Shown one piece after another: positions 235 through 11,652 of a DNA stretch of 11,805 bases. Both the position numbers and the translations under genes were made by a program. This stretch comes from Paramicrosporidium saccamoebae KSL3 (lineage: Eukaryota; Fungi; Cryptomycota), in assembly GCA_002794465.1 (NCBI GenBank), contig MTSL01000057.1, positions 473 to 12,277 of the forward strand, read 5' to 3'. The first letter of the stretch is position 1; every line of letters starts with the position of its first letter. The notes under the pieces are model-generated. The model saw only the letters and a program-made list of their open reading frames with translations, was not told the origin of the DNA and did no database searches.

Positions 235-870
235 ATGATGACAAAGCCATTGGGCCTGTGTGAGATTGAACTTCCAAGGGCCGTTATTCTGAGGAAAATC
301 AAGCTTGCCGTTATCTCCCCACCAGTTGTCATAATAGTGTAGGTTGAAGGAAAACCAGTTCAGAAGGAAGCCAAACTGGCCCTGACCAAGGCCTGCACCG
401 TCTTTCTCTCATACCTCACCACCCAGTAACCGTCTAAACTTTGCTAATACATAGCGCCCTCGATGAGACACTTGAGGTACGCAATCCCAAACTGCTGAAT
501 GGCAGCCATGTGACGGAAGCACTTCGAAAAATGGGCTTTGCCTTTCTCCTCGATGACATCTACGAGTGCATTCAGAGTATATATTGCACACAACTAACAC
601 ATAGAGCATCGATCCTATATGCGCGAACGGGCCGACCATAAGGCAGCCAATGCGAATGCGCCCTCTGAGCCAGATTCTGATGGCGTGGAAGATGAGGATG
701 AGACACCTGAGACTCCCTTTGTAGAAATAGAGCCCACTACTCTTGCGGGATCCTCTATAGCTGCAACCTCTGGTGAAAACGATAACCAGGATGACGTGAT
801 CATTTTGGAAAATATCGAGCCGCCACATCCAGAAAAAGGAGAGAGTTGGCCTGTAGAACACACTGCATGA
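235..870 (+). CDS. DPB4: H2B-like histone-fold protein, DNA polymerase epsilon subunit D / CHRAC17 (DPB4/POLE3-like), 4 exons, ~181 aa
   Basis: Exons 235-309, 343-425, 455-576 and 605-870 total 546 nt and splice in frame to MMTKPLGLCEIELPRAVILRKIKLA-VEGKPVQKEAKLALTKACTVFLSYLTTH-ALDETLEVRNPKLLNGSHVTEALRKMGF..., followed by an acidic tail (EPDSDGVEDEDE). The LPxAxIxR...KEAxxAxxKAxTVFxSYLT pattern matches POLE3/Dpb4 and lacks the NF-YB LPIANV signature. Confidence 0.82.
310..342 (+). other. Spliceosomal intron, 33 nt, phase 0 (DPB4 intron 1)
   Basis: GTTATC...GTGTAG. Removal joins KLA|VEGK within the histone fold; the terminal TAG is an in-frame stop if retained. Confidence 0.8.
426..454 (+). 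other. Spliceosomal intron, 29 nt (DPB4 intron 2)
   Basis: GTAACC...GCTAAT-ACATAG, with a branch-like CTAAT just before the acceptor; removal restores the frame. Confidence 0.88.
577..604 (+). other. Spliceosomal intron, 28 nt (DPB4 intron 3)
   Basis: GTATAT...ACTAAC-ACATAG; removal joins the 441-641 frame to the 619-870 frame. Confidence 0.88.
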
Positions 871-910: not shown

Positions 911-2467
911 ATGGATGAAGACCAACAGCACTCGAGAGACATCCAGTCCTCAAGAGACTTTCAATCTTCGAGAGAAAGTCAACAACAGTACTCAAGGGAG
1001 AGTCAGCACCATCACTCGAGAGAGAGTCAACAACAACACTCGCGCGAGCAATCTTCGGGAGACGCGCGCCTCACTGACACTCTTCGCAACATGACCCGAC
1101 GAAACCGCGCGGCTATTCTTCGTACTATAGTGCACCATCTGGATTCAAGCGACGCACATTTCCTCCTAGAGCTAGTAAAACGCAAACTGAGCTGCGACCC
1201 ACTGCACGAACTCCCGCCGGAGCTTGCCGCACTGGTGCTAAGTAGGATGGCAGATGCGACAGGACTACTGTGGATGGCACGGGTGTGTCGAGAATGGCGG
1301 ACACAGGTGCTGGGCGATGTTGTATTATGGAGGCATCATTTAAAAAGTATGCCATTAAGCCGACCAGCAAGAGGACGACTCGAACAAGCTCAAACTGTTT
1401 CTGACTATGTAAATGTGCTAAAATATGAAACTCTACTGAGACGGAACTGGCAGAGCGACAATAGTTCTTCGAGGATGACCATTCCCGCACTGGGAGTTGG
1501 CGTGATTACCTGTCTCCAATTGGATGAGGAGCAGGGATGGCTGATCAGTGGTGCTGATAACGGAAATATTGGGATCTGGAATGTAAATAGCGGCGAATGC
1601 AGTGCCCTCCCGGCAGGACATCAGGGCGGAGTGTGGACCTTGAAGGCTACAAAGGATGGAATTCTGGTCACTGGCTCCACAGACCGAACTTTAATTGTTT
1701 GGGACATGAAAAGTGGTGCTCGGATAGCAGACCTGATCGGACATTCCTCTACAGTGCGATGTGTGGAAATTATTGGAAATTATATTGTCAGCGGATCGCG
1801 AGATGGCACCTTGAGAGTATGGTGTCGTCGGAGCGGGTTCACATGCTTGCATATTCTGACGGGTCACACCGGCTCAGTGAGGTGCATTGTGCCCTTTGGG
1901 GAAAGATACATAGTCTCGGGATCATATGACCATACTCTGCGAGTTTGGGATTTGAACACTGGTCGATGTGTGGCGACTTGTGCTGGCCACGACGGCAAAG
2001 TATACTCACTAGCGGCATCTGACGAGTACATCTTTTCCGGTGGAATTGATGCCAAGATTCGGGTGTGGAGGCCCTTGACAGGCGAATGTGTCGATGTGTT
2101 TTCAGACCATGGAGCCTTGGTGGGTTTGTTAGAGATCCACGGAGATTACTTGGTTGCGGGCAGTACTGACGGCTCCTTGAGTTTGTGGAATGCACGCACT
2201 CTCCATCGTCTCCGTTTCCTCGAACTCGCCCATCGCTCCTCCATCACCGCCCTTGGAATCAATCGCTACGCCATCATCTCGGGCTCAGAACGCGCTTTGC
2301 GTCTTTGGTCATTGGTGGAGATGTGCTCTGATGAGCCTCCCGAGCCGCTGACTCTTTCAGACAAGGCTGACGTTGTATGGCGGGTAGTGGCAGGCGAGAC
2401 TACGGCTGTAGTGGCCTACCAACAGACGGGAATTACTCGCATCGAACTAATCAACTTTGCACCATAG
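911..2467 (+). CDS. CDC4: F-box/WD40 SCF substrate receptor, Cdc4/FBXW7-like, 518 aa
   Basis: Uninterrupted ORF with a helical D-domain-like segment, an F-box (DPLHELPPELAALVLSRM...ARVCREWR...LWRH) and 7-8 WD40 repeats. GVITCLQ, GHQGGVWTL, GSTDRTLIVWD, GHSSTVRC and VSGSYDHTLRVWD match the Cdc4/Fbw7/SEL-10 subfamily. Confidence 0.85.
   Translation: MDEDQQHSRDIQSSRDFQSSRESQQQYSRESQHHHSRESQQQHSREQSSGDARLTDTLRNMTRRNRAAILRTIVHHLDSSDAHFLLELVKRKLSCDPLHELPPELAALVLSRMADATGLLWMARVCREWRTQVLGDVVLWRHHLKSMPLSRPARGRLEQAQTVSDYVNVLKYETLLRRNWQSDNSSSRMTIPALGVGVITCLQLDEEQGWLISGADNGNIGIWNVNSGECSALPAGHQGGVWTLKATKDGILVTGSTDRTLIVWDMKSGARIADLIGHSSTVRCVEIIGNYIVSGSRDGTLRVWCRRSGFTCLHILTGHTGSVRCIVPFGERYIVSGSYDHTLRVWDLNTGRCVATCAGHDGKVYSLAASDEYIFSGGIDAKIRVWRPLTGECVDVFSDHGALVGLLEIHGDYLVAGSTDGSLSLWNARTLHRLRFLELAHRSSITALGINRYAIISGSERALRLWSLVEMCSDEPPEPLTLSDKADVVWRVVAGETTAVVAYQQTGITRIELINFAP
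923..1063 (+). repeat. Degenerate coding tandem repeat (18-nt and 24-nt units) encoding six SR[D/E] units in the Cdc4 N-terminal tail
   Basis: QQHSRD-IQSSRD-FQSSRE-SQQQYSRE-SQHHHSRE-SQQQHSRE-QSSGD; the DNA units differ at synonymous positions (tcg/tca, aga/agg/cgc). Confidence 0.85.
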
Positions 2468-2763: not shown

Positions 2764-5700
2764 TTATTTGGGACATGTGTGGGAGCGAAAGAAATGTGAC
2801 AGTCCCCAAAGCGCAGGAATTAGGGTGAGAATAAAGTCGTTAGTCTCTGCGGCCAGTTCTGTCCAGTCGAGAACAAAGGACAACTCCATCTCGTGTTTGT
2901 CCCTAATATCCTGAAACAATCCCGTGGTCACATTATGGCCAGTATACTCGGTAACCTGTATGATCGTAACCTGGAGGCGCTGCAGCAAGGAGATGGGAAT
3001 AGAGTTGAGTTGTGGATGCTGCTCAAGGAACCTAGTGATGGCGCGAATATTTCCAAAACCATACTTTTCCCCGCGACTGCATCGAACCATTACATGGTCG
3101 CACTCCCTGAATTTTGGAGCTAGCCGGAGGTTGACTATAGGAGTATCAGCATGTTCCACTCTTTCGACTACTCCTCTTTTGATGAGTTCCTTGACGTCAG
3201 TGGACGTGTCGGCCGTCATGTCCATGTCCACCGATTTCGCAGAGGACAGAACAAATCTGTAATCGCGACCATTGCTTTCCCTTCCTTTTACGTCAATATT
3301 CATCCATCGAAGCGGCCTGTATCTCATCCTCGTAAACTGTAATTGGTCGTCGTAAATGATCTGAAATTCAGAGTTTCCGTTGGCCGCCGAATTGAATAGC
3401 GCCAAAGATACCGCGTAGCCGGATAACCGGCCAGTACTGATCATTCCAATCTTTGCCAAGAATGACAGTACCACAGACTCGTCGCTGACAAATGGCTCAA
3501 AGGAACTATTCATGGCAGCGAGAGTGCTCTTTTTTTTAACCACGGGCTTTGTGTGTTTTGGTTCTTCATTCTCGTCGGGCTCTATGCGCAGGCTATCCAC
3601 TGGCGCGGGCTCAATTGGACTCTTTTCTTCTGCTTTGGCAAAATCCAAATCGACTCCAGCGCTCCTTCTCTTGAAATACTGCTCGGTCGAGGAATCACCC
3701 AGTGCTTTGTAGCCAAGTCGAAGCGCCTCTTGCACTCGATTGACAGTTGCCGACGTTCCATCCTCAAGGAAGAGTCGTGGAAGATTAGTTACATACAAAT
3801 TTCCAAACTTGATCGCAGCCTTGATTATCCCAAACTCTTCAGATCCCATCCTTCTGGCGAGATCTAACTGACGATAAGCATGACTGAAAAACTCTTGATA
3901 AAGAAATCCCTTTAGGCACAGCGGATCGAGCTTGTCAAAACTCTGCAGTACCGGAACGTAACACTGAGCATCAAAGTGCTGTGGTCTCCTACTCCCATGA
4001 TGCATATCAAAGTTGATGGAATCCATTTTCGTTTTACTGTCATCAAACAGCAGGGTACTGGATCCTTCCAGAAACACCGATGCGGCTAATCCATGTCTTC
4101 TTACTAGTCTAGGCCTCTTGCTTCTAAGTGCTAGCTCCATCTCTACATCAGGGGAATGCGATACTTCCCATAAGCTGGAAATGTTTAATGTCTGGGCTAG
4201 CAACTGATATGCCTGGAAAGAGTACTCTCTCAGATGCACGACTCCATTCTTACCCACATGAATATCGCTGGATAATCCTCTCCTAATTGTCTCCTCACTC
4301 TCAAATGCAAAGTGGTGTAAAATTTTCAGCACGCATTCTCCCAAGTCGCGGACTTTGTGTTCCTCAAAGGACCCCAAGCTCTTGGCATGCTCATTGACAT
4401 GGGAAATTTCTGCAGAAATGTTTTCAAAGCTGGGCGCGGCAGCATCAGGAATGGCTAGTCCGCCAATATCCAATGCACAGAGGGCAAGCGATAGGGAAGA
4501 CATCTTTCCGCTATGCCGGGTACTTGATCGTACCAAGGTCTGCGCACGGGCCCACCTTAGTAGGACAAGAACAATTGCCAAGTTTCCCGGATCCATTATC
4601 GTCATTTTACAGAGTCTTAGCGCTGGCAAATGCCAATCAATATTACGGAATATGGTAAAGACATAGGGCGAACCACGATGTTCCAATGTACTGGGGTGTT
4701 TGACCATCGGGAATGTGCTATTTAAAGCAGTGTAAACTTGCCCAAAGAGAACCTCTTCAGAAACGTCCATGTAAACATTGATATCTGAACCGGCTCTGTT
4801 TGCCAGTCCGATAGTTGAGCCAGAGAGTTCGATGCAGACGTTATCGCCAACGATCGTTTTTAATAGTTCCTTGAGGAGATTGAAAAAATTTCGGCATTCC
4901 ACCAAATTTCCGCTTACCTCATGCTTGATACAGTCTTGCGCCCATTGAACGACTTGCTGGCCTAGTATCCCCACTGCATCGGCACGCATGGCAATGGTGC
5001 CATTTTTCTCGCGTGCTTCAATCAAGTAATCAGTGACAATCCATGGAAAGCTTAACACTGGCTCAACCAAGCCTCTTGGCTTGATGGGCTCATGATAGGT
5101 TACGTAGTACCAAGCAGAGGCCTTAGCTGGTAGCTCTTCCTTGGGGACATTTGCACAAAAATTACTCCGATAAAGTGCACAAGTCTCCTTCAGTTTGGTA
5201 CTGACAATCTACAAAATGAGACTAAACTGAACGACTGACGTACTTCCATGATCCTGCGAGATTCGTCTATACCCATCATTTCAGGCTCTAGTCTGGAACC
5301 CGAGAACACTTGAGCTTCCGATCCAAACCCGTACAACCGCAGAACTCCATTCAGGCAATCGCAATAGTCTCGATACGAGTCTCTTGCTGATGGCAGATAT
5401 TTTTCGTAGCCAGCAACCAGAAATGCACTGTCCGGTTTGATCTCACGATGACCAGTGGCTGAATAAAAAATGCTCTTTGCCTTTCTGTACATTTGTCCAG
5501 TCACTTTTTGTGAGACATGGGTTGTCATTCCTTGTTTTTGCATAAAATCAGGCCAGCTGATGGGTCGATGTTCCTTTGGAAAGTCTGGAAGAATTCCAGT
5601 CTTGGGGAAATCGACTGCAAGTGAGCAGAGGTAGGCAAGATGGACGCACACCGGATCCCTTACGCCGTCAGGCTTGACATCGGCATGGGCAATATGTGCA

Positions 5701-8700
5701 TTCGAGATTGGTCCAAGCTGATCAACAGAAATGAATTTGACGAGAAACTCTCGAATATCTGCAGTGGTAACTTGCTCTGTGACCACTTTTGCCGGCGGGG
5801 CTGCATAATCCATAGGCTCAACACTGGTGGGCAAAAGTAGTGCCGGATCCCAAGTTACAAAATACAAGTCACCGTCAAGGTCAGACCCAGAACACATGTC
5901 AGTGAGTGGACGAGGACCTTTACGAGGAAACACGACGCAATCAAAGTGGAATCTTTGCAAAAGTTCATTATCGACTGCCCGCAGCCTTCTGGCATCACCA
6001 GGATGCATGCAAGGATTCTTTGCCATTGACACTTCAGAGACTACCTTCCAGCATCCCTCTCTTCCAGGCCTTAAAATCCCCAGACGTACCGCTTCCTCAT
6101 CCGATGGCTGCTTACTAATCTGCACAAAAACTTCATTCTCCTTCAAGGTTCCCGTTTCATCGATGACACCCATGATAATCCTCCCCATCGGGACAAAAAC
6201 TCGGGATCGCGTCAATAAATCGACAAGTCGACGTCTGTAGACTGTAATCAGCAACGAGCGAAAAAATGGCTCAGAATCAAGACTCCAGGATTGGATAACC
6301 TTGGAAGATAGTGGAGAGAGAACCCTGAGATTGCTTTCTAGCCAACTGGAGGATTCTGTCGAGTTGAGCAGCATATTCGGCATGCTCTTTAGCATTTGGT
6401 CTTGCAGATTCATGAATGCTTCGTCAGGGACGCCCAGACTGCTGAAAATTACTAAAACTTGCCGATTCAAATAGCATGGAATGTAAGCAGACCAATTGAG
6501 GACCTCCAGGGTGCGGTGAGATGATTCAAACTTTTGCATGGACGGACGAAACCAAATTCTTTTGTCTTCGCTAGCAGTCGTGGAATCGGGACGGATCGCT
6601 AGCACGCCCTTGAAGCCCGCAAATCTTATTTGGAATGCAGTTGGAATGGTCGAAAATCCCATGCGATCAGAAATGGCCTTTGCAAGTCCATATGTTATCA
6701 TTCCAATTCCATCAGAATAGGTATATGTCCTGTCAATTCCGTCGACCGTTGTGGTTACTTCATAATCCGGAACTATTGTAGAATCATGGAGTTCAATTTC
6801 TGCAACGTCAATAGACGCCGACAGGCTGTGGCCAAGACGTGCCACGTACTTTGCAACATTTTTGATCGAAGAAAAATCGCCACACCAACGGCGAATATAA
6901 TCGGCATCAACGTGAACATCTTGAACAGAACCCCCCTCTCCAGGAACCCGGATTAAATGCGGGGCAACAAACCAACATCCATGATCACGTAACTGACTGG
7001 ATGACATTGCCAGGAATTCATACCTACGATCCCCAATCGCAGTTCCCTCGCACAGAAAATTCGAAATGCGATTATGAACATTTTTGATGCTTGCGCCAGT
7101 CTTTGCCATGCTCAGCTTCTGCATGTCCTCATCCCTGAAATGGACTCGAAGAAAATAGTCCGAATCAAATGCACGCAAAATTCGGTTCCGAGTAATCTTT
7201 TTGGGGTGCTGGAATACAAGTCGAGTGGGTGTCAAGATTACGAACCGCACTAGAGCAGTGTTGTGAGCCTTGTCATATTGAATATTTGAAGACTCGTACA
7301 ACAGATTCGTCTGAGTCTGGATCATTTCATGCGTGAGCGACGCTAGTGAGGCATGTGCAGTGAGCATGACATTGGCAAATCGACAATTTTGCAATCTCAA
7401 AATCATATCCATCATTAAACGATGTCTCAATTCCGGGCGGACACTTGTCAAAAAGCTCAAGAACAAGGCACTTGGGGTCCGGTACAGCAATGATTCCATG
7501 CAAGTGGACATTAGCACATGAACATCGCACTTGAATTCAAAATTGTCTACGGTAGTTGAGAGCTGAAACAGATCATGAGCGCAAAGATCTCCCTGTCGGG
7601 GCTCAAGGGTGCTGAACCGTCCGTAAACGACATGCAGGCCACGAATCTCAATCTTCCTCAGAGTATTGACAAGATGATCACGAACATTGTTAGTGAGGAA
7701 CATGTCAATCTTGTACACTGACACTTCTTCAATATTGATAAACTCGGCAATCTCTGCAGAGGAAGCTCTGTACCATTCGAATCGATCAATGGTCACCAGC
7801 TTCACCTCCATGGTGGAATCAGTGTGAGCATAATAATACATTGCTGGTGACTTGAGAGACAGGTACATTGACGTTGCCTTTTCATCACTCCCCAAGTCGA
7901 TTGCAATAAAGTTGTCAAGGATGGTGAAGCAAAAATCAATTCGGAAGACGCGGTCACTGGACACCATGAATACTTGGATCTCCTCCATCCCAACATTAAA
8001 CACCACCTTGACAGTCGATGGTAAGGATCGCAGACAGACAAATTCGCATGGAGTCGCAAAAGTCCCCAGATCAATGTTCTCTCCAACCAACATTATCTGG
8101 TCAGCAATTCGAGAAAACGACCTTTCCGTCTTGAATGACATTAAAATGTGATCCTCTGAAAGCAGTTCACTCGTACTGCAGACAAGCTTGGCAATCTCAG
8201 GAATCCTGAAAGCCGAGTTGCTAGACGGCTCTGCATTAAGACGCATGAGCATTTTCCCAGAAAATACAGGGTCTTCCTCAACAACAGACACAAAGTTCTT
8301 CAAGGGCAGCTCTGACAAAAATGGGAACGAATCAAGCGTCCAATTGGACACTTCTCCCACGAGATTGTGGAATCGCATCTGAATGGTTCTGAATCTTTTC
8401 CGGACGTCTTCTGAGGAATTGCTGTCTGCGCCGAGAGAAAGCTCATAATCAGACCTGGTCCAATTAAGCGCAAGACTGGCCTGAATGTTCAATTGCAGAG
8501 TGGTGAGGGCGGAGATGGACCGAGTAGTCTTCTCGGCAGCCATATGTTGGAGAATGACGTGATGCATAGTCTTTTCTGATGCAATTAATTCTTGGTAGGA
8601 GATTCTTTCCGCTTCACTACAAATCAAAACATAGCGACTGTCATTGGCTCTAGCGCGACCCCGGGATTGAATAAAACTCGTCAGGGTCCACGACTGATCA

Positions 8701-10530
8701 AATAATATGACGTTATTGCAGACAGGGACATCGATTCCCTCCTGCAGAACACTGGTTGAAATTAGCAACTTGTGTTCGCCAGTGCGAAACTTTTGCAAAA
8801 CTGGCGACTGGTGATCAGCCCACGACATGCCGTCAAGCTGTCCTGCGCTTTGACCAACAAAAAAGGTAGGCTTCCATTTTGTATCAATCCCTTCATGGTC
8901 GACCAAAACACGACAGAGGTACCGAGCAGTCTTTTTAGTTTGTACAAATACAATGGCTCTCGTCGTGTCATTCACCTCGATACTCGAGAGCACGGAAAAA
9001 AGAGTGGATACTTTATCGGAGAGAGAATCGGCGCCCTTGATCGTCTGCAAAAACGTAGATGCTGTCTCGGAAGAGTTTGCTGACAGCAACTCTTGAATAT
9101 AGATGCGAGCATATTTGGGACCCAGAATGCTGTTCAACTCTTCGGCAGTGAATATCTGTTGGATCTGTAAAAGCAGTCCTACGGCGTCATTGTTCTTTGA
9201 ATCGTGTGCCTTGGCTATGAGCGATCTCAAAAGACCGCGAGCCTGGCCTGTTCCATCTAGTTTGTCAATGCCTACTGTCCACGGCAACTCCATTTTTTCC
9301 CGAATCGTTTTTATAAGACCTTTACAATAGTCCAAAATTGCGCTGGCCATCTCACGACATTCGTCGGTAGTCTCCACAGTGTGGAATGTAATAGACGGCC
9401 TATTGATTGTCTCCATCAAATCTTTCCAAAAAATAAAAGGCATAAAGATCTGGGCTTCCATCAGGTCACACAAGATTCCCAATCCAACATTCATCGAAAC
9501 TGGGTCGCCTGAAACTGGAGATGCCGACAGACCGAGAAGAAGAGGTCGATACTTGACATCGGTGGTCCTGTAGCATCGATTAACGAGCACAGAATATGGA
9601 TGGTTCTTGACAGTATGGTGCACTTCATCCAAAACAAGCAGACTGACATCTTCCAGTCTAAGATATTTACCCTGAATCCAATTGATGAGAACTTGCGCAG
9701 TCACGACAATGGCATCGTGATCTCGAAGCTTCTTTAACGAAATCTCATCACTGTTCTCTCCTACAACAATGAGGTCTTTAATGGGCAGTACCACACGCAA
9801 TAAGCACGCTCAAGCTAGTCTGCTCGCTGAAATATTGGCCTTGCTGGAATGCCAACGGCACTCGTTCTACAACAAAAAGGACGATTTTTGCGGGATTGAG
9901 GCGATGCATAAAGCTTGCCAGCATTGCAGCAATCAGAGTCTTACCAGCACCAGTTGGTAGATACACAACAGTGTTCCGTTGTGCGGCATTCACAAAACAC
10001 TCGATCTGATACGGCCTCGGCTTATCGCGCGCCAACTCGCGCAGAACAACCTGGGCAAGGTCGGGGATAGTTGGAATGTAAACCGGCGTTGCATGTGTCG
10101 CAAGGTCATACACCTCACCCTTTCCAAGAGTTTCTGAATAGCCTCTTTCTATAATCCCAGGCACAAAACGCTTGACGGTAGCCCATTTTCCCGCAAACTC
10201 TCGGTCACCTTGTCTTAGGGTGGTCACGGTGCTCCGAAAGCAACACGTATTCTCTCGTCGAAACCCTATGACGTTCATACTGCCAATAATTTCCTGGCAG
10301 ACTACACATCCGACTTCATGAGACGATATGGGCCGCCTTTTTTCATCAGATTGTGGGGCCAGGAAGACTGGGGAGCTTGGCTCGGAGAAAAATGCATCTT
10401 GGCATTCAAGCCGTATACAAAGATTCAACCCATTGCCTTGATTACTGAAGAAACAGAGCATGTCCGCCGTAATCAATGTGGACCGACATTTGTTACAAAC
10501 AAGATGCGTGCTGTGGGGCTCTACATTCAT
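2764..10530 (-). CDS. Multidomain RNAi protein, ~2566 aa: Zn domain + RIG-I/Dicer-family DExH helicase + eukaryotic RNA-dependent RNA polymerase + nucleotidyltransferase-like domain + C-terminal beta-rich domain
   Basis: Exons 10530-9792 (739 nt), 9760-5244 (4517 nt) and 5208-2764 (2445 nt) total 7701 nt, or 2566 aa plus stop. Junction 1 gives SVLIAC-G-ENSDEI inside the first RecA lobe. Junction 2 gives RRIME|IVSTKLK...AKASAWYYVTYH...VLSFPWI, the conserved C-terminal head motif of cellular RdRPs, in frame with the 768-aa ORF. Confidence 0.9.
4170..4910 (-). other. Pol-beta-superfamily nucleotidyltransferase of Cid1/TUTase/Trf4 type plus PAP-associated-like helices, probably catalytically degenerate
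   Basis: CIELSGS-x10-DIN (GS at 4816-4821, DIN at 4777-4785) parallels the family motif FGS-x10-DxD. IVLVLLRWARAQTL...GKMSSLSLALCAL parallels LxxxxKxWAkxxgl...GxLSSYxLxLM. DLGECVLKILHHFAF parallels SLGxLLxxFFxYY. Confidence 0.7.
5040..8395 (-). other. Full-length eukaryotic RNAi RdRP (RDR/QDE-1/EGO-1 family) with N-terminal accessory region, catalytic core and head
   Basis: LTPTRL...NRILR...FLRVHFRDED; YEFLAMSSSQLRDHGCWF; KYVARLGHSLS; YSDGIGMI; AFQIRFAGFKGVL; RPSMQKF; LNRQ; MGVIDETGTL; KNPCMHPGD; catalytic CSGSDLDGDLYFVTWD (DLDGD at 5868-5882); AVDFPKTG; KASAWY; LSFPW. Confidence 0.97.
5209..5243 (-). other. Spliceosomal intron, 35 nt, phase 0 (RdRP-fusion intron 2)
   Basis: GTACGT...CTCATTTTGTAG; removal restores the conserved RdRP head motif and links to the nucleotidyltransferase exon. 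Confidence 0.92.
8560..10026 (-). other. SF2 DExH helicase of the RIG-I/Dicer/DRH family, with insertion domain
   Basis: Q motif PRPYQ; motif I LPTGAGKT (~9937-9960); Ia VERVPLAFQQ; Ib VVTAQVL; II DEVHH (9615-9629); KNHPY; III GLSASP; IV AIVFVQTKKTA; V STSVLQEGIDVPVCN; VI FIQSRGRAR (~8648-8675). All motifs are intact. Confidence 0.95.
9761..9791 (-). other. Spliceosomal intron, 31 nt, phase 1 (RdRP-fusion intron 1)
   Basis: GTACTG...CTCATTGTTGTAG; removal joins helicase motifs Q/I/Ia to Ib/II. Confidence 0.92.
10165..10509 (-). other. N-terminal Zn-binding domain, RLR-CTR/Yippee/CULT-like fold
   Basis: Two CxxC pairs (HLVCNKCRSTLI at C12/C15; HEVGCVVCQEIIG at C75/C78) separated by beta-type segments, ending in GKWATV. 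This recalls RIG-I CTD LLCRKC...IFC..NC..DWG...SKWKDF. Recognised by eye only. Confidence 0.6.
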
Positions 10531-10897
10531 TGATCAAGGAGAGATCGTTTGACAGCCCATGTCATCTTTTAAAAGAATTAAAGAATCATTTATTAGCAAG
10601 CCACTATATGAGGCAATCTAGTTTATGTAGAACAGTATCCACTGTTCATTGGTGATCCCAACCCTGTGGTGATAGCATTGTCACCTAGTGAGGAAGATGC
10701 TAAAACATGGCTACAGTGTCAATCTGTTCACTTCTCCGCCTCTGAATCTTCTTTTCATGTTTGATCTGCCACGTATCACCACGTTAATCTACGGTTCTTT
10801 AGCCTTTTACTCAACAGTTTGCATATTCAGAAACCTCGGTCAGATGGATACAAATGATGGCTTAATCAGCGTCTTGGATATGCCAGCTTGGGTATCG

Positions 10898-11095: not shown

Positions 11096-11652
11096 ATGAC
11101 CCAGGCGTTCGGTCAACACTTACTTCGCTCGTCCGAGATATTTTTCCGCTCTGCACTGTCCGTCGGCTTTGTCAACCTAAAGCCCATCCTTCCGGGACGT
11201 ATTATTGATGTTAAGACTAAGAGTAGATGTCCTGGTAATACCACGGAGGGTGGTGCACAGATTCACCGATTTGACACCAGAGGAAGTATCGGACCTCTTT
11301 GTCTCTGCCCAGCGGATAGCTCGTGTGGTTGAGCGTGAATATGGGGGAAGTTCATTGACTATTGCCATCCAAGACGGTCCTGAGGCCGGACAATCGGTCC
11401 ACGTATGCTCTGCTGAGTTTTTTAAATTCTAGCACGTACATGTCCACATATTGCCACGAAAGAAGGGCGATTTTGCTAAAAACGACGACATTTATGACGA
11501 GGTATCCAATCACCTACTGGCGCTGACAATAGCTAAATTCATGGAACAAGTTGGATAACGATGCGAGGAAACCCAGGACGCAGGAAGAAATGTCCCGTGA
11601 GGCGTCACATCTCTATCGTCATTTCCAAACCGATCAGGATTTAAAGAAATGA
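11096..11652 (+). CDS. FHIT: Fhit/Hnt2 bis(5'-adenosyl)-triphosphatase (HIT family), 4 exons, ~155 aa
   Basis: Exons 11096-11198, 11227-11402, 11433-11501 and 11533-11652 give [19 protein letters not shown]...[17 protein letters not shown]...[36 protein letters not shown]...RKPRTQEEM. The HxHxH triad and the Fhit-specific [12 protein letters not shown] and ND.IY.EL motifs are present. Confidence 0.95.
11199..11226 (+). other. Spliceosomal intron, 28 nt (FHIT intron 1)
   Basis: GTATTA...ACTAAG-AGTAG; removal restores PG-H-VLV. Confidence 0.92.
11403..11432 (+). other. Spliceosomal intron, 30 nt, phase 0 (FHIT intron 2)
   Basis: GTATGC...TTCTAG; removal restores QSVH|HVHVHIL, and the terminal TAG is an in-frame stop if retained. 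Confidence 0.92.
11502..11532 (+). other. Spliceosomal intron, 31 nt, phase 0 (FHIT intron 3)
   Basis: GTATCC...GCTGAC-AATAG; removal gives IYDE|[10 protein letters not shown]. Confidence 0.85.

Follow-up and report, generated by a model that had tools for sequence, protein, structure and literature searches.

Fusions of a helicase to an RNA-dependent RNA polymerase (RdRP) have been reported in Dictyostelium, peronosporomycete oomycetes, Hydra and Nematostella, and only the helicase and RdRP domains were described in these proteins (PMC3661229, PMC4791657). The Dictyostelium fusions are RrpA, RrpB and RrpC (Martens, 2002, as cited in PMC3661229); RrpC acts in DIRS-1 small interfering RNAs (siRNAs) and in the spreading of the silencing signal (PMC3950715, PMC3661229). 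An RdRP, a superfamily 2 (SF2) helicase and a Pol-beta-type nucleotidyltransferase (NTase) also come together, as separate subunits, in the RNA-directed RNA polymerase complex (RDRC) of S. pombe (Rdp1, Hrr1 and Cid12), in Tetrahymena (Rdr1 with Rdn1/Rdn2) and in C. elegans (EGO-1/RRF-1 with DRH-3 and RDE-3). Hrr1 belongs to a different helicase family from the one described below. Here we examine a gene on the minus strand of an 11,805-nucleotide stretch of the genome of the amoeba parasite Paramicrosporidium saccamoebae KSL3 (GenBank assembly GCA_002794465.1, contig MTSL01000057.1, positions 473–12,277; the whole stretch is hereafter called the window). We consider it likely that this locus holds a single cellular RdRP gene with a six-part architecture, that it belongs to an old fusion family and that its product works by the silencing mechanism set out below.

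The gene is built from three open reading frames (ORFs) on the minus strand of the window (10530..9778, 9800..5190 and 5070..2764). Removal of positions 9761–9791 and 5209–5243 gives a single open frame, and an in-frame TGA at 10536–10534 precedes the ATG at 10530. The model, derived from the ORFs, the spliced frame and the homologue alignment, is as follows.

2764–10530, minus strand: whole gene, three exons and two introns, 2566 codons plus stop
9792–10530, minus strand: exon 1, residues 1–246 and the first base of codon 247
9761–9791, minus strand: intron 1, 31 nt, phase 1, GTACTG...TTGTAG, GTACTGCCCATTAAAGACCTCATTGTTGTAG
5244–9760, minus strand: exon 2, ending at residue 1752
5209–5243, minus strand: intron 2, 35 nt, phase 0, GTACGT...TTGTAG, GTACGTCAGTCGTTCAGTTTAGTCTCATTTTGTAG
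2764–5208, minus strand: exon 3, residues 1753–2566 and the stop codon

At the first junction (residues 246/247), splicing restores GAGKT and the downstream helicase motifs, and there the alignment to nine homologues holds column by column (‘LIACG|ENSD’ here, ‘LMACGETAD’ and ‘LLACGEQNN’ in homologues). At the second (residues 1752/1753), it recovers a helix that is conserved in the RdRP head (‘IME|IVSTKLK’ here, ‘MQIVSTLVK’ and ‘MEIVGAQFK’ in homologues). Each junction is crossed by one HMMER stretch against a solved structure: the first by the match to an ancestral Dicer helicase (query 29–509) and the second by that to Arabidopsis RDR2, whose residues 383–1116 align with residues ~1086–1820 of our protein. 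In a full-length search, homologues of 2200–3041 residues span 97–99% of the spliced protein (the query coverage obtained with P0002–P0004) with no break at either junction. The two introns share the start GTAC and the end CTCATT(G/T)TTGTAG; over both strands of the window, the pattern CTCATT(N0-3)TGTAG is seen precisely at their two 3′ ends and nowhere else. The homologue in a related genome (L001; GCA_020047435.1, JAHZTN010003247.1) is interrupted by 41-nt GT-AG introns at both of these codon positions, in matching phases (‘ACG|G’, phase 1; ‘AID|VV’, phase 0); it has one additional intron inside the RdRP (‘FKG|VVA’), and a gene caller had split it into four ORFs. The neighbouring HIT-family gene needs three GTA...TAG introns (28, 30 and 31 nt) to restore its histidine triad; introns of this tiny size can thus be taken as normal in the P. 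saccamoebae genome. The sequence evidence confirms that the three ORFs are one real gene encoding a 2566-residue protein. An earlier note on this DNA, made from its letters, had proposed this join by 31-nt and 35-nt GT-AG introns, and its coordinates and intron sizes were exact. It had also placed both junctions within conserved units and held a chance join to be unlikely; the homologues and the solved structures do run through the helicase and the RdRP head, and the junction alignments, the shared 3′ motif, the L001 introns and the HIT introns all agree.

The closest match, at 97% identity, is a 2414-residue ‘RNA dependent RNA polymerase family protein’ from P. saccamoebae itself (P0001, NCBI). 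Since this public model already joins the three ORFs, the fusion itself is not new. The NCBI model begins at Met85 and lacks the first 84 residues; its first intron is too long, so that 50 conserved residues are deleted, including the lysine of the Walker A GKT, and at its second junction the conserved head-domain helix is replaced by intron-derived residues. We rejected the NCBI splice model on account of these two losses, and the gene model of the earlier note is the better one. The mis-spliced public model, which is short of its first 84 residues and of the ATP-binding motif of the helicase, is thereby corrected.

Alignment of the spliced protein with domain families, solved structures and homologues shows the following order of modules: a zinc domain, the helicase, a stretch of ~445 residues, the RdRP with its head, an NTase fold and a predicted barrel of 460 residues.

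10126–10530, minus strand: N-terminal zinc domain, residues 1–135, predicted beta-tent fold (profile, AlphaFold model and Foldseek)
8580–10038, minus strand: Dicer/RIG-I-type DExD/H helicase, residues ~165–640, contains intron 1 (Pfam and PDB matches)
7245–8579, minus strand: unassigned region of ~445 residues (641–1085) between the helicase and the RdRP core, conserved in homologues
5005–7244, minus strand: RdRP core and head domain, residues 1086–1820, contains intron 2 (Pfam and RDR2 alignment)
5868–5882, minus strand: RdRP catalytic motif DLDGD, residues 1540–1544, intact
4165–4977, minus strand: Cid1/GLD-2/Trf4-type NTase-like domain, residues ~1830–2100, catalytically degenerate
4777–4824, minus strand: degenerate NTase motif SGSTIGLANRAGSDIN, residues 1881–1896, hGS kept, DxD changed to DxN
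2767–4149, minus strand: C-terminal beta-rich domain, residues 2106–2566, predicted triphosphate-tunnel-like (TTM/Cet1/RESC1-2-like) fold (Foldseek)

The polymerase matches the Pfam RdRP family PF05183 over positions 1–581 of 582 (residues 1089–1673; E = 3.2e-166), and polymerase and head align with RDR2 in one stretch (E = 5.5e-127); the RdRP_head family PF26253 is detected on homologues. The full-length PF05183 match and the DxDGD motif identify the protein, by sequence, as a eukaryotic cellular RdRP. GAGKT (from residue 194), DEVH (from 291), Helicase_C (497–616) and the RdRP (1089–1673) all lie in one spliced frame, and GxGKT, DExH and DLDGD are kept in all 14 of the 14 family members checked. 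Helicase-bearing RDRs have been placed in the gamma subgroup (PMC4791657); the best solved match here is RDR2. Arabidopsis RDR2 (PDB entries 7eu0 and 7roz) shares the DxDGD motif and the head domain. It lacks a helicase, an NTase and a tunnel domain, and no alignment was obtained for its N-terminal region. Upstream of the core, residues 641–1085 gave no Pfam or PDB sequence match.

The helicase motifs are intact (GAGKT at 194–198, DEVH at 291–294), and Pfam finds ResIII/DEAD at 170–328 in addition to Helicase_C. The Hel1, Hel2i and Hel2 core is related to the helicases of Dicer and of the RIG-I-like receptors (RLRs): searches of the PDB gave DCL1 (6e-50), AncD1D2 (3e-48), RIG-I (4e-40) and LGP2 (7e-34), and the E-values against RIG-I, LGP2 and MDA5 range from 1e-40 to 1e-26. 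In RLRs a zinc-binding C-terminal domain (CTD) follows the helicase; here the CTD-like domain is N-terminal, so that the order is permuted. This domain carries CNKC at 12–15, CVVC at 75–78 and an invariant Trp116. Its family profile, run against the PDB, has the CTD of a C. elegans Dicer-related helicase (DRH) as top match (E = 0.004), followed by Mis18, MsrB and LGP2. Its AlphaFold (AF2) model has a predicted local distance difference test score (pLDDT) of 83.5. The best Foldseek set for this model consists of the CTDs of DRH-1, DRH-3, LGP2, RIG-I and MDA5 (E from 1e-5 to 1e-3, template-modelling (TM) scores 0.5–0.67), led by DRH-1 (9.6e-6), the DRH-3 CTD (2e-5) and LGP2 and RIG-I (1e-4 to 5e-4; TM 0.55–0.67); the beta-tent domains of Mis18 and cereblon come next in the ranking. 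The chytrid orthologue gives weak Pfam matches to RIG-I_C-RD and to Yippee-Mis18. With moderate confidence, we read the model of residues 1–135 as a putative RLR-CTD-like, RNA-end-binding domain ahead of the helicase. The pair of helicase and CTD-like domain resembles C. elegans DRH-3, whose CTD binds 5′-triphosphate RNA (PDB entry 6m6s, a top match).

The NTase is visible only through a family profile and a structure model; Pfam run on the window protein alone finds no family past residue 1673. A profile built from nine homologues matches GLD-2, TUT7, Trf4, CutA, Cid1, URT1 and Tailor over ~230 positions (E from 1.7e-15 to 1e-4), and the AlphaFold model of the window protein retrieves GLD-2, Cid1, URT1 and TUT7 in Foldseek (TM normalized to the target ~0.55). 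Of nine members examined, five show the Pfam family PF22600, which is above its cut-off in orthologues; in the window protein it is not detected. The order of helicase, RdRP and terminal uridylyltransferase (TUTase)-like domain in one polypeptide, as claimed in the earlier note, is thus upheld by the profile and Foldseek matches. The Pol-beta palm motif hG[GS] (SGS at 1881–1883) and the WAR...GKMSS motif of the PAP-associated central domain are present. The catalytic triad DxD...D is not: residues 1894–1896 read DIN, and a Thr occupies the third position. The window protein and nine relatives have DxN (NxN in one), with T, V, S, Q or I at the third Asp position, whereas DxD is found in P0007, P0008, P0010, P0036, P0056, P0065 and P0180, and hGS...DxD with the third Asp is kept in the chytrid, dictyostelid, oomycete, Bradysia and Mesotaenium proteins. 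From the loss of two of the three carboxylates, and from the two-metal mechanism of the superfamily, the NTase of the rozellid clade is probably catalytically inactive. The retained WAR...GxxSS motif suggests that binding persists. A known parallel is the inactive N-terminal module of TUT4/TUT7, in which a Cid1-type fold has lost its catalytic residues and has a binding role (TUT7 292–472 aligns to our family profile); the protein context differs, and a binding role here would be by analogy. Another family member, P0006 (2219 residues), seems to have lost the NTase motif entirely but still has helicase, RdRP and some of the barrel.

The C-terminal 460 residues form a separate, beta-rich and well conserved domain with the recurrent features FxEGS, IKFGxxY, NLPRLF, SSFEP, PLRW, DxR, VxEY and ExE. 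A structure model of residues 1800–2566 (m27e80b044eab) gave the trypanosome proteins RESC1/RESC2 as top Foldseek matches in the PDB (E from 5e-10 to 6e-8), with a high root-mean-square deviation (rmsd) of superposition, and giant-virus mRNA 5′-phosphatases, capping enzymes and a CYTH protein in BFVD (4e-5 to 6e-3). The block-mean pLDDT is ~70–94 over model residues 520–767 and lower in the N-terminal third of the domain, which includes a disordered stretch (model 454–514, pLDDT < 50). Conserved charged residues recur on predicted strands (DxR, ExE, KFG, RW) with the i, i+2 spacing of residues that line a tunnel. The ExExK motif of TTM enzymes is not seen: the first strand has only FxEGS, with one Glu that is not invariant, while an ExE-like strand at the C-terminus carries a single invariant Glu. 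A barrel profile searched against Pfam and PDB sequences gave nothing meaningful at E-values up to 10. At the fold level, residues 2106–2566 may be described as a triphosphate-tunnel-like barrel. RESC1/RESC2 resemble Cet1p and mimivirus RNA triphosphatases, and RESC2 binds the 5′-triphosphate of guide RNA without catalysis (PMC10201420). These TTM-fold proteins are the best structural matches of the model that contains the C-terminal domain; unlike them, our domain is fused to an RdRP, shows no detectable sequence similarity to them and has no evident motif A glutamates. The structural match hints at a possible distant kinship between the guide-RNA 5′-end binder RESC1/RESC2 and the C-terminal domain of the RdRP. 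RESC1/RESC2 reportedly lack relatives by sequence beyond the kinetoplastids.

A word-indexed search for homologues of the C-terminal profile yielded just four relatives, all with split ORFs. An exhaustive search of cluster representatives with the barrel profile gave 308 matches, 178 of them below 1e-10, and the barrel lies at the C-terminus of about 35 proteins of 2200–3400 residues. Named carriers include Amoebozoa, among them dictyostelids and Archamoebae (Heterostelium, Acytostelium, Synstelium, Cavostelium, Mastigamoeba and Pelomyxa), oomycetes (Plasmopara and Pythium), the dinoflagellate Effrenium, the chytrid Phlyctochytrium, streptophytes (the liverwort Riccia and Mesotaenium) and insects (two Bradysia flies). 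Pfam finds helicase and RdRP in all of seven long carriers, and the NTase above its cut-off in four of the seven, namely those outside the DxN clade or distant from the window protein. The 2433-residue Cavostelium protein is encoded whole on a single transcriptome contig, as one mRNA. The C-terminal profiles match the C-termini of the Acytostelium, Heterostelium and Plasmopara proteins. By sequence comparison, the gene is a member of the old helicase–RdRP fusion family of the Dictyostelium Rrp proteins and oomycete RDR, and the same collinear architecture is shown across Amoebozoa, fungi, insects, oomycetes, a dinoflagellate and streptophytes. It shares with RrpA/RrpB/RrpC and with the Phytophthora, Plasmopara, Hydra and Nematostella RDRs a DExD/H helicase and Helicase_C upstream of the RdRP, and with Acytostelium, Heterostelium and Plasmopara full-length collinearity that takes in the zinc domain, the NTase and the barrel. 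It differs from them in the degenerate NTase active site of the Paramicrosporidium clade; the papers searched describe only helicase and RdRP.

Being so widespread, the architecture is neither new nor tied to genome reduction. The earlier note had thought it possibly undescribed and linked it to a reduced genome; its own suggestion to search for proteins of the same order removes the novelty, the gene model being unaffected, and most carriers have ordinary or large genomes. Its module list named three domains that stand, and was incomplete in that the RIG-I-CTD-like zinc domain and the tunnel-like barrel were missing. The literature searched, in which the likeliest source (Burroughs, Ando and Aravind, 2014) was not covered, contained no description of an RdRP–helicase–nucleotidyltransferase fusion or of the other modules. 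What our analysis adds is the corrected gene model, the unannotated CTD-like domain and C-terminal barrel, and the clade-specific loss of the tailing active site. Some carriers lie beyond the groups named in the literature: Riccia sorocarpa (P0124), Mesotaenium (P0065) and Effrenium voratum (P0135) have the complete architecture, and the proteins of Bradysia odoriphaga (P0009) and B. coprophila (P0036) have the zinc domain, helicase, RdRP, an NTase with intact DxD and the barrel. Contamination was rejected for the Bradysia genes, which lie on contigs of 2.4 Mb and 6.3 Mb in two species.

These modules would fit together as follows. The zinc domain and helicase would act as a DRH-3/RIG-I-like unit, in permuted order, recognizing an RNA end or duplex, and the ATP-driven helicase would load or clear the template. 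From this template the RdRP is predicted to make complementary RNA that serves a silencing pathway. The NTase of most lineages would tail 3′ ends, as the separate proteins Cid12, RDE-3 and Rdn1 do, and the C-terminal tunnel might hold or trim the 5′-triphosphate of the de novo initiated product. In Paramicrosporidium the NTase would most likely be only an RNA- or nucleotide-binding scaffold, like the inactive TUT4/TUT7 module. The analogy to RDRC and to EGO-1/DRH-3/RDE-3 is a reasonable one of activities, not of complex membership: there the subunits are separate, whereas here one chain carries them all, with the CTD-like domain before the helicase, an additional tunnel domain and an NTase that is probably inactive.

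Several points weigh against this account of the protein. The splicing is read from homology and splice signals; the N-terminal domain resembles the beta-tent domains of Mis18, Yippee and cereblon nearly as well, with slightly weaker scores; the conserved Asn at the second carboxylate is not random and the nucleotide-binding motif WAR...GxxSS survives, so that residual or altered NTase activity may remain; and the model of residues 1800–2566 has a mean pLDDT of 69, with a tunnel assignment at the level of the fold, no evident canonical ExExK and Foldseek matches that came without an aligned query range, their location on the C-terminal domain being deduced. That the ORFs are instead three separate genes, or frameshifted pseudogene remnants with coincidental introns, is hardly credible. 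Stops do interrupt the frames, but each junction lies inside a single conserved domain that homologues read through, L001 keeps the intron positions and phases, the 3′ motif is confined in the window to these two introns, the adjoining HIT gene has introns alike in size and signals, and the catalytic motifs of helicase and RdRP are without exception intact across 7.7 kb. It also seems improbable that the NTase is still an active tailing enzyme in Paramicrosporidium and the protein a complete one-chain RDRC, as the earlier note had proposed in having the TUTase module engage the 3′ end. Conservation of hGS, of the first Asp and of WAR...GKMSS speaks for activity, and the clade-wide Asn suggests selection on the site. 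Against this, ten of ten clade members have other residues at two of the three metal-binding carboxylate positions while all outgroups keep DxD and D, and PF22600 no longer detects the domain in the window protein. Mutation of these Asp residues abolishes activity in Pol-beta-type nucleotidyltransferases.

Somewhat less improbable, though still unlikely in our view, is that the C-terminal 460 residues are merely barrel-like, with a structural, oligomerization or partner-binding role, and do not form a tunnel that binds or hydrolyses triphosphate. The lack of any Pfam family or PDB chain matched by sequence, the absence of ExExK and the high rmsd of the superpositions would all fit such a domain. 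The independent top matches in the PDB (RESC1/RESC2) and among viral proteins nevertheless share one fold class, the i, i+2 charges are those expected of a tunnel lining, and block-mean pLDDT is ~70–94 over model residues 520–767. Finally, the enzyme could work outside canonical Dicer/Argonaute RNA interference (RNAi), for instance by sensing and countering RNA viruses of the parasite on its own, or in the quality control of RNA. The N-terminal domain and helicase are similar to RNA sensors of innate immunity. Neither RNAi nor introns come up in the paper on the Paramicrosporidium genome. Family members that have been studied genetically, such as Dictyostelium RrpC, act in small-RNA silencing, and many microsporidia keep Dicer and Argonaute (PMC7017984); we give the non-RNAi role little credence and retain a part in silencing as the preferred reading.

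The long-known helicase–RdRP proteins emerge as larger machines than has been described: the same chain would also carry an RNA-end sensor, a tailing enzyme and a triphosphate tunnel, conserved from amoebae as far as liverworts and flies. A bolder view, which we hold tentatively and at less than even confidence, is that the whole family is a pan-eukaryotic one-chain amplifier of silencing, possibly as old as the last eukaryotic common ancestor, with three modules not described in the papers searched, the NTase having turned into a pseudo-enzyme in rozellids. The first module would be an RLR-type end-sensing domain before the helicase, and the RIG-I/DRH sensor pair may then have existed in an RdRP context long before animals; the other two may be a Cid1-type tailing enzyme and a 5′-triphosphate tunnel nearest to RESC1/RESC2, which hints that RESC1/RESC2 derive from the same module as the RdRP tunnel. 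Rozellids, having lost the tailing site across their clade, offer a natural experiment on whether RdRP function requires tailing, and the genetically tractable Dictyostelium allows each module to be tested by point mutation. The basic picture of RNA silencing is unchanged, and the value of these findings is moderate.

As to the surroundings, the HIT-family gene is FHIT-like and lies at window positions 11096–11652 on the plus strand, divergent from the RdRP gene. Removal of its introns (11199–11226, 28 nt; 11403–11432, 30 nt; 11502–11532, 31 nt) restores the HxHxH motif and an FHIT-like C-terminus (Pfam HIT, E = 1.4e-27). On the other side, the gene for a 518-residue WD40 beta-propeller protein (911–2467, plus strand) converges on the RdRP gene, with 297 bp between it and the RdRP stop; the protein starts with a low-complexity SRE/SQQ repeat and carries an F-box-like motif at the N-terminus. 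At ~235–600 (plus strand) are histone-fold-like fragments split over frames, judged by eye to be of the NF-YB, Dpb4 or NC2-beta kind, with a likely 29-nt GTAACC...ATAG intron near 426–454; the first two fragments, once joined, gave no Pfam match. The order of HIT, helicase–RdRP and WD40 genes in the window is shared by L001 (2042–13060).

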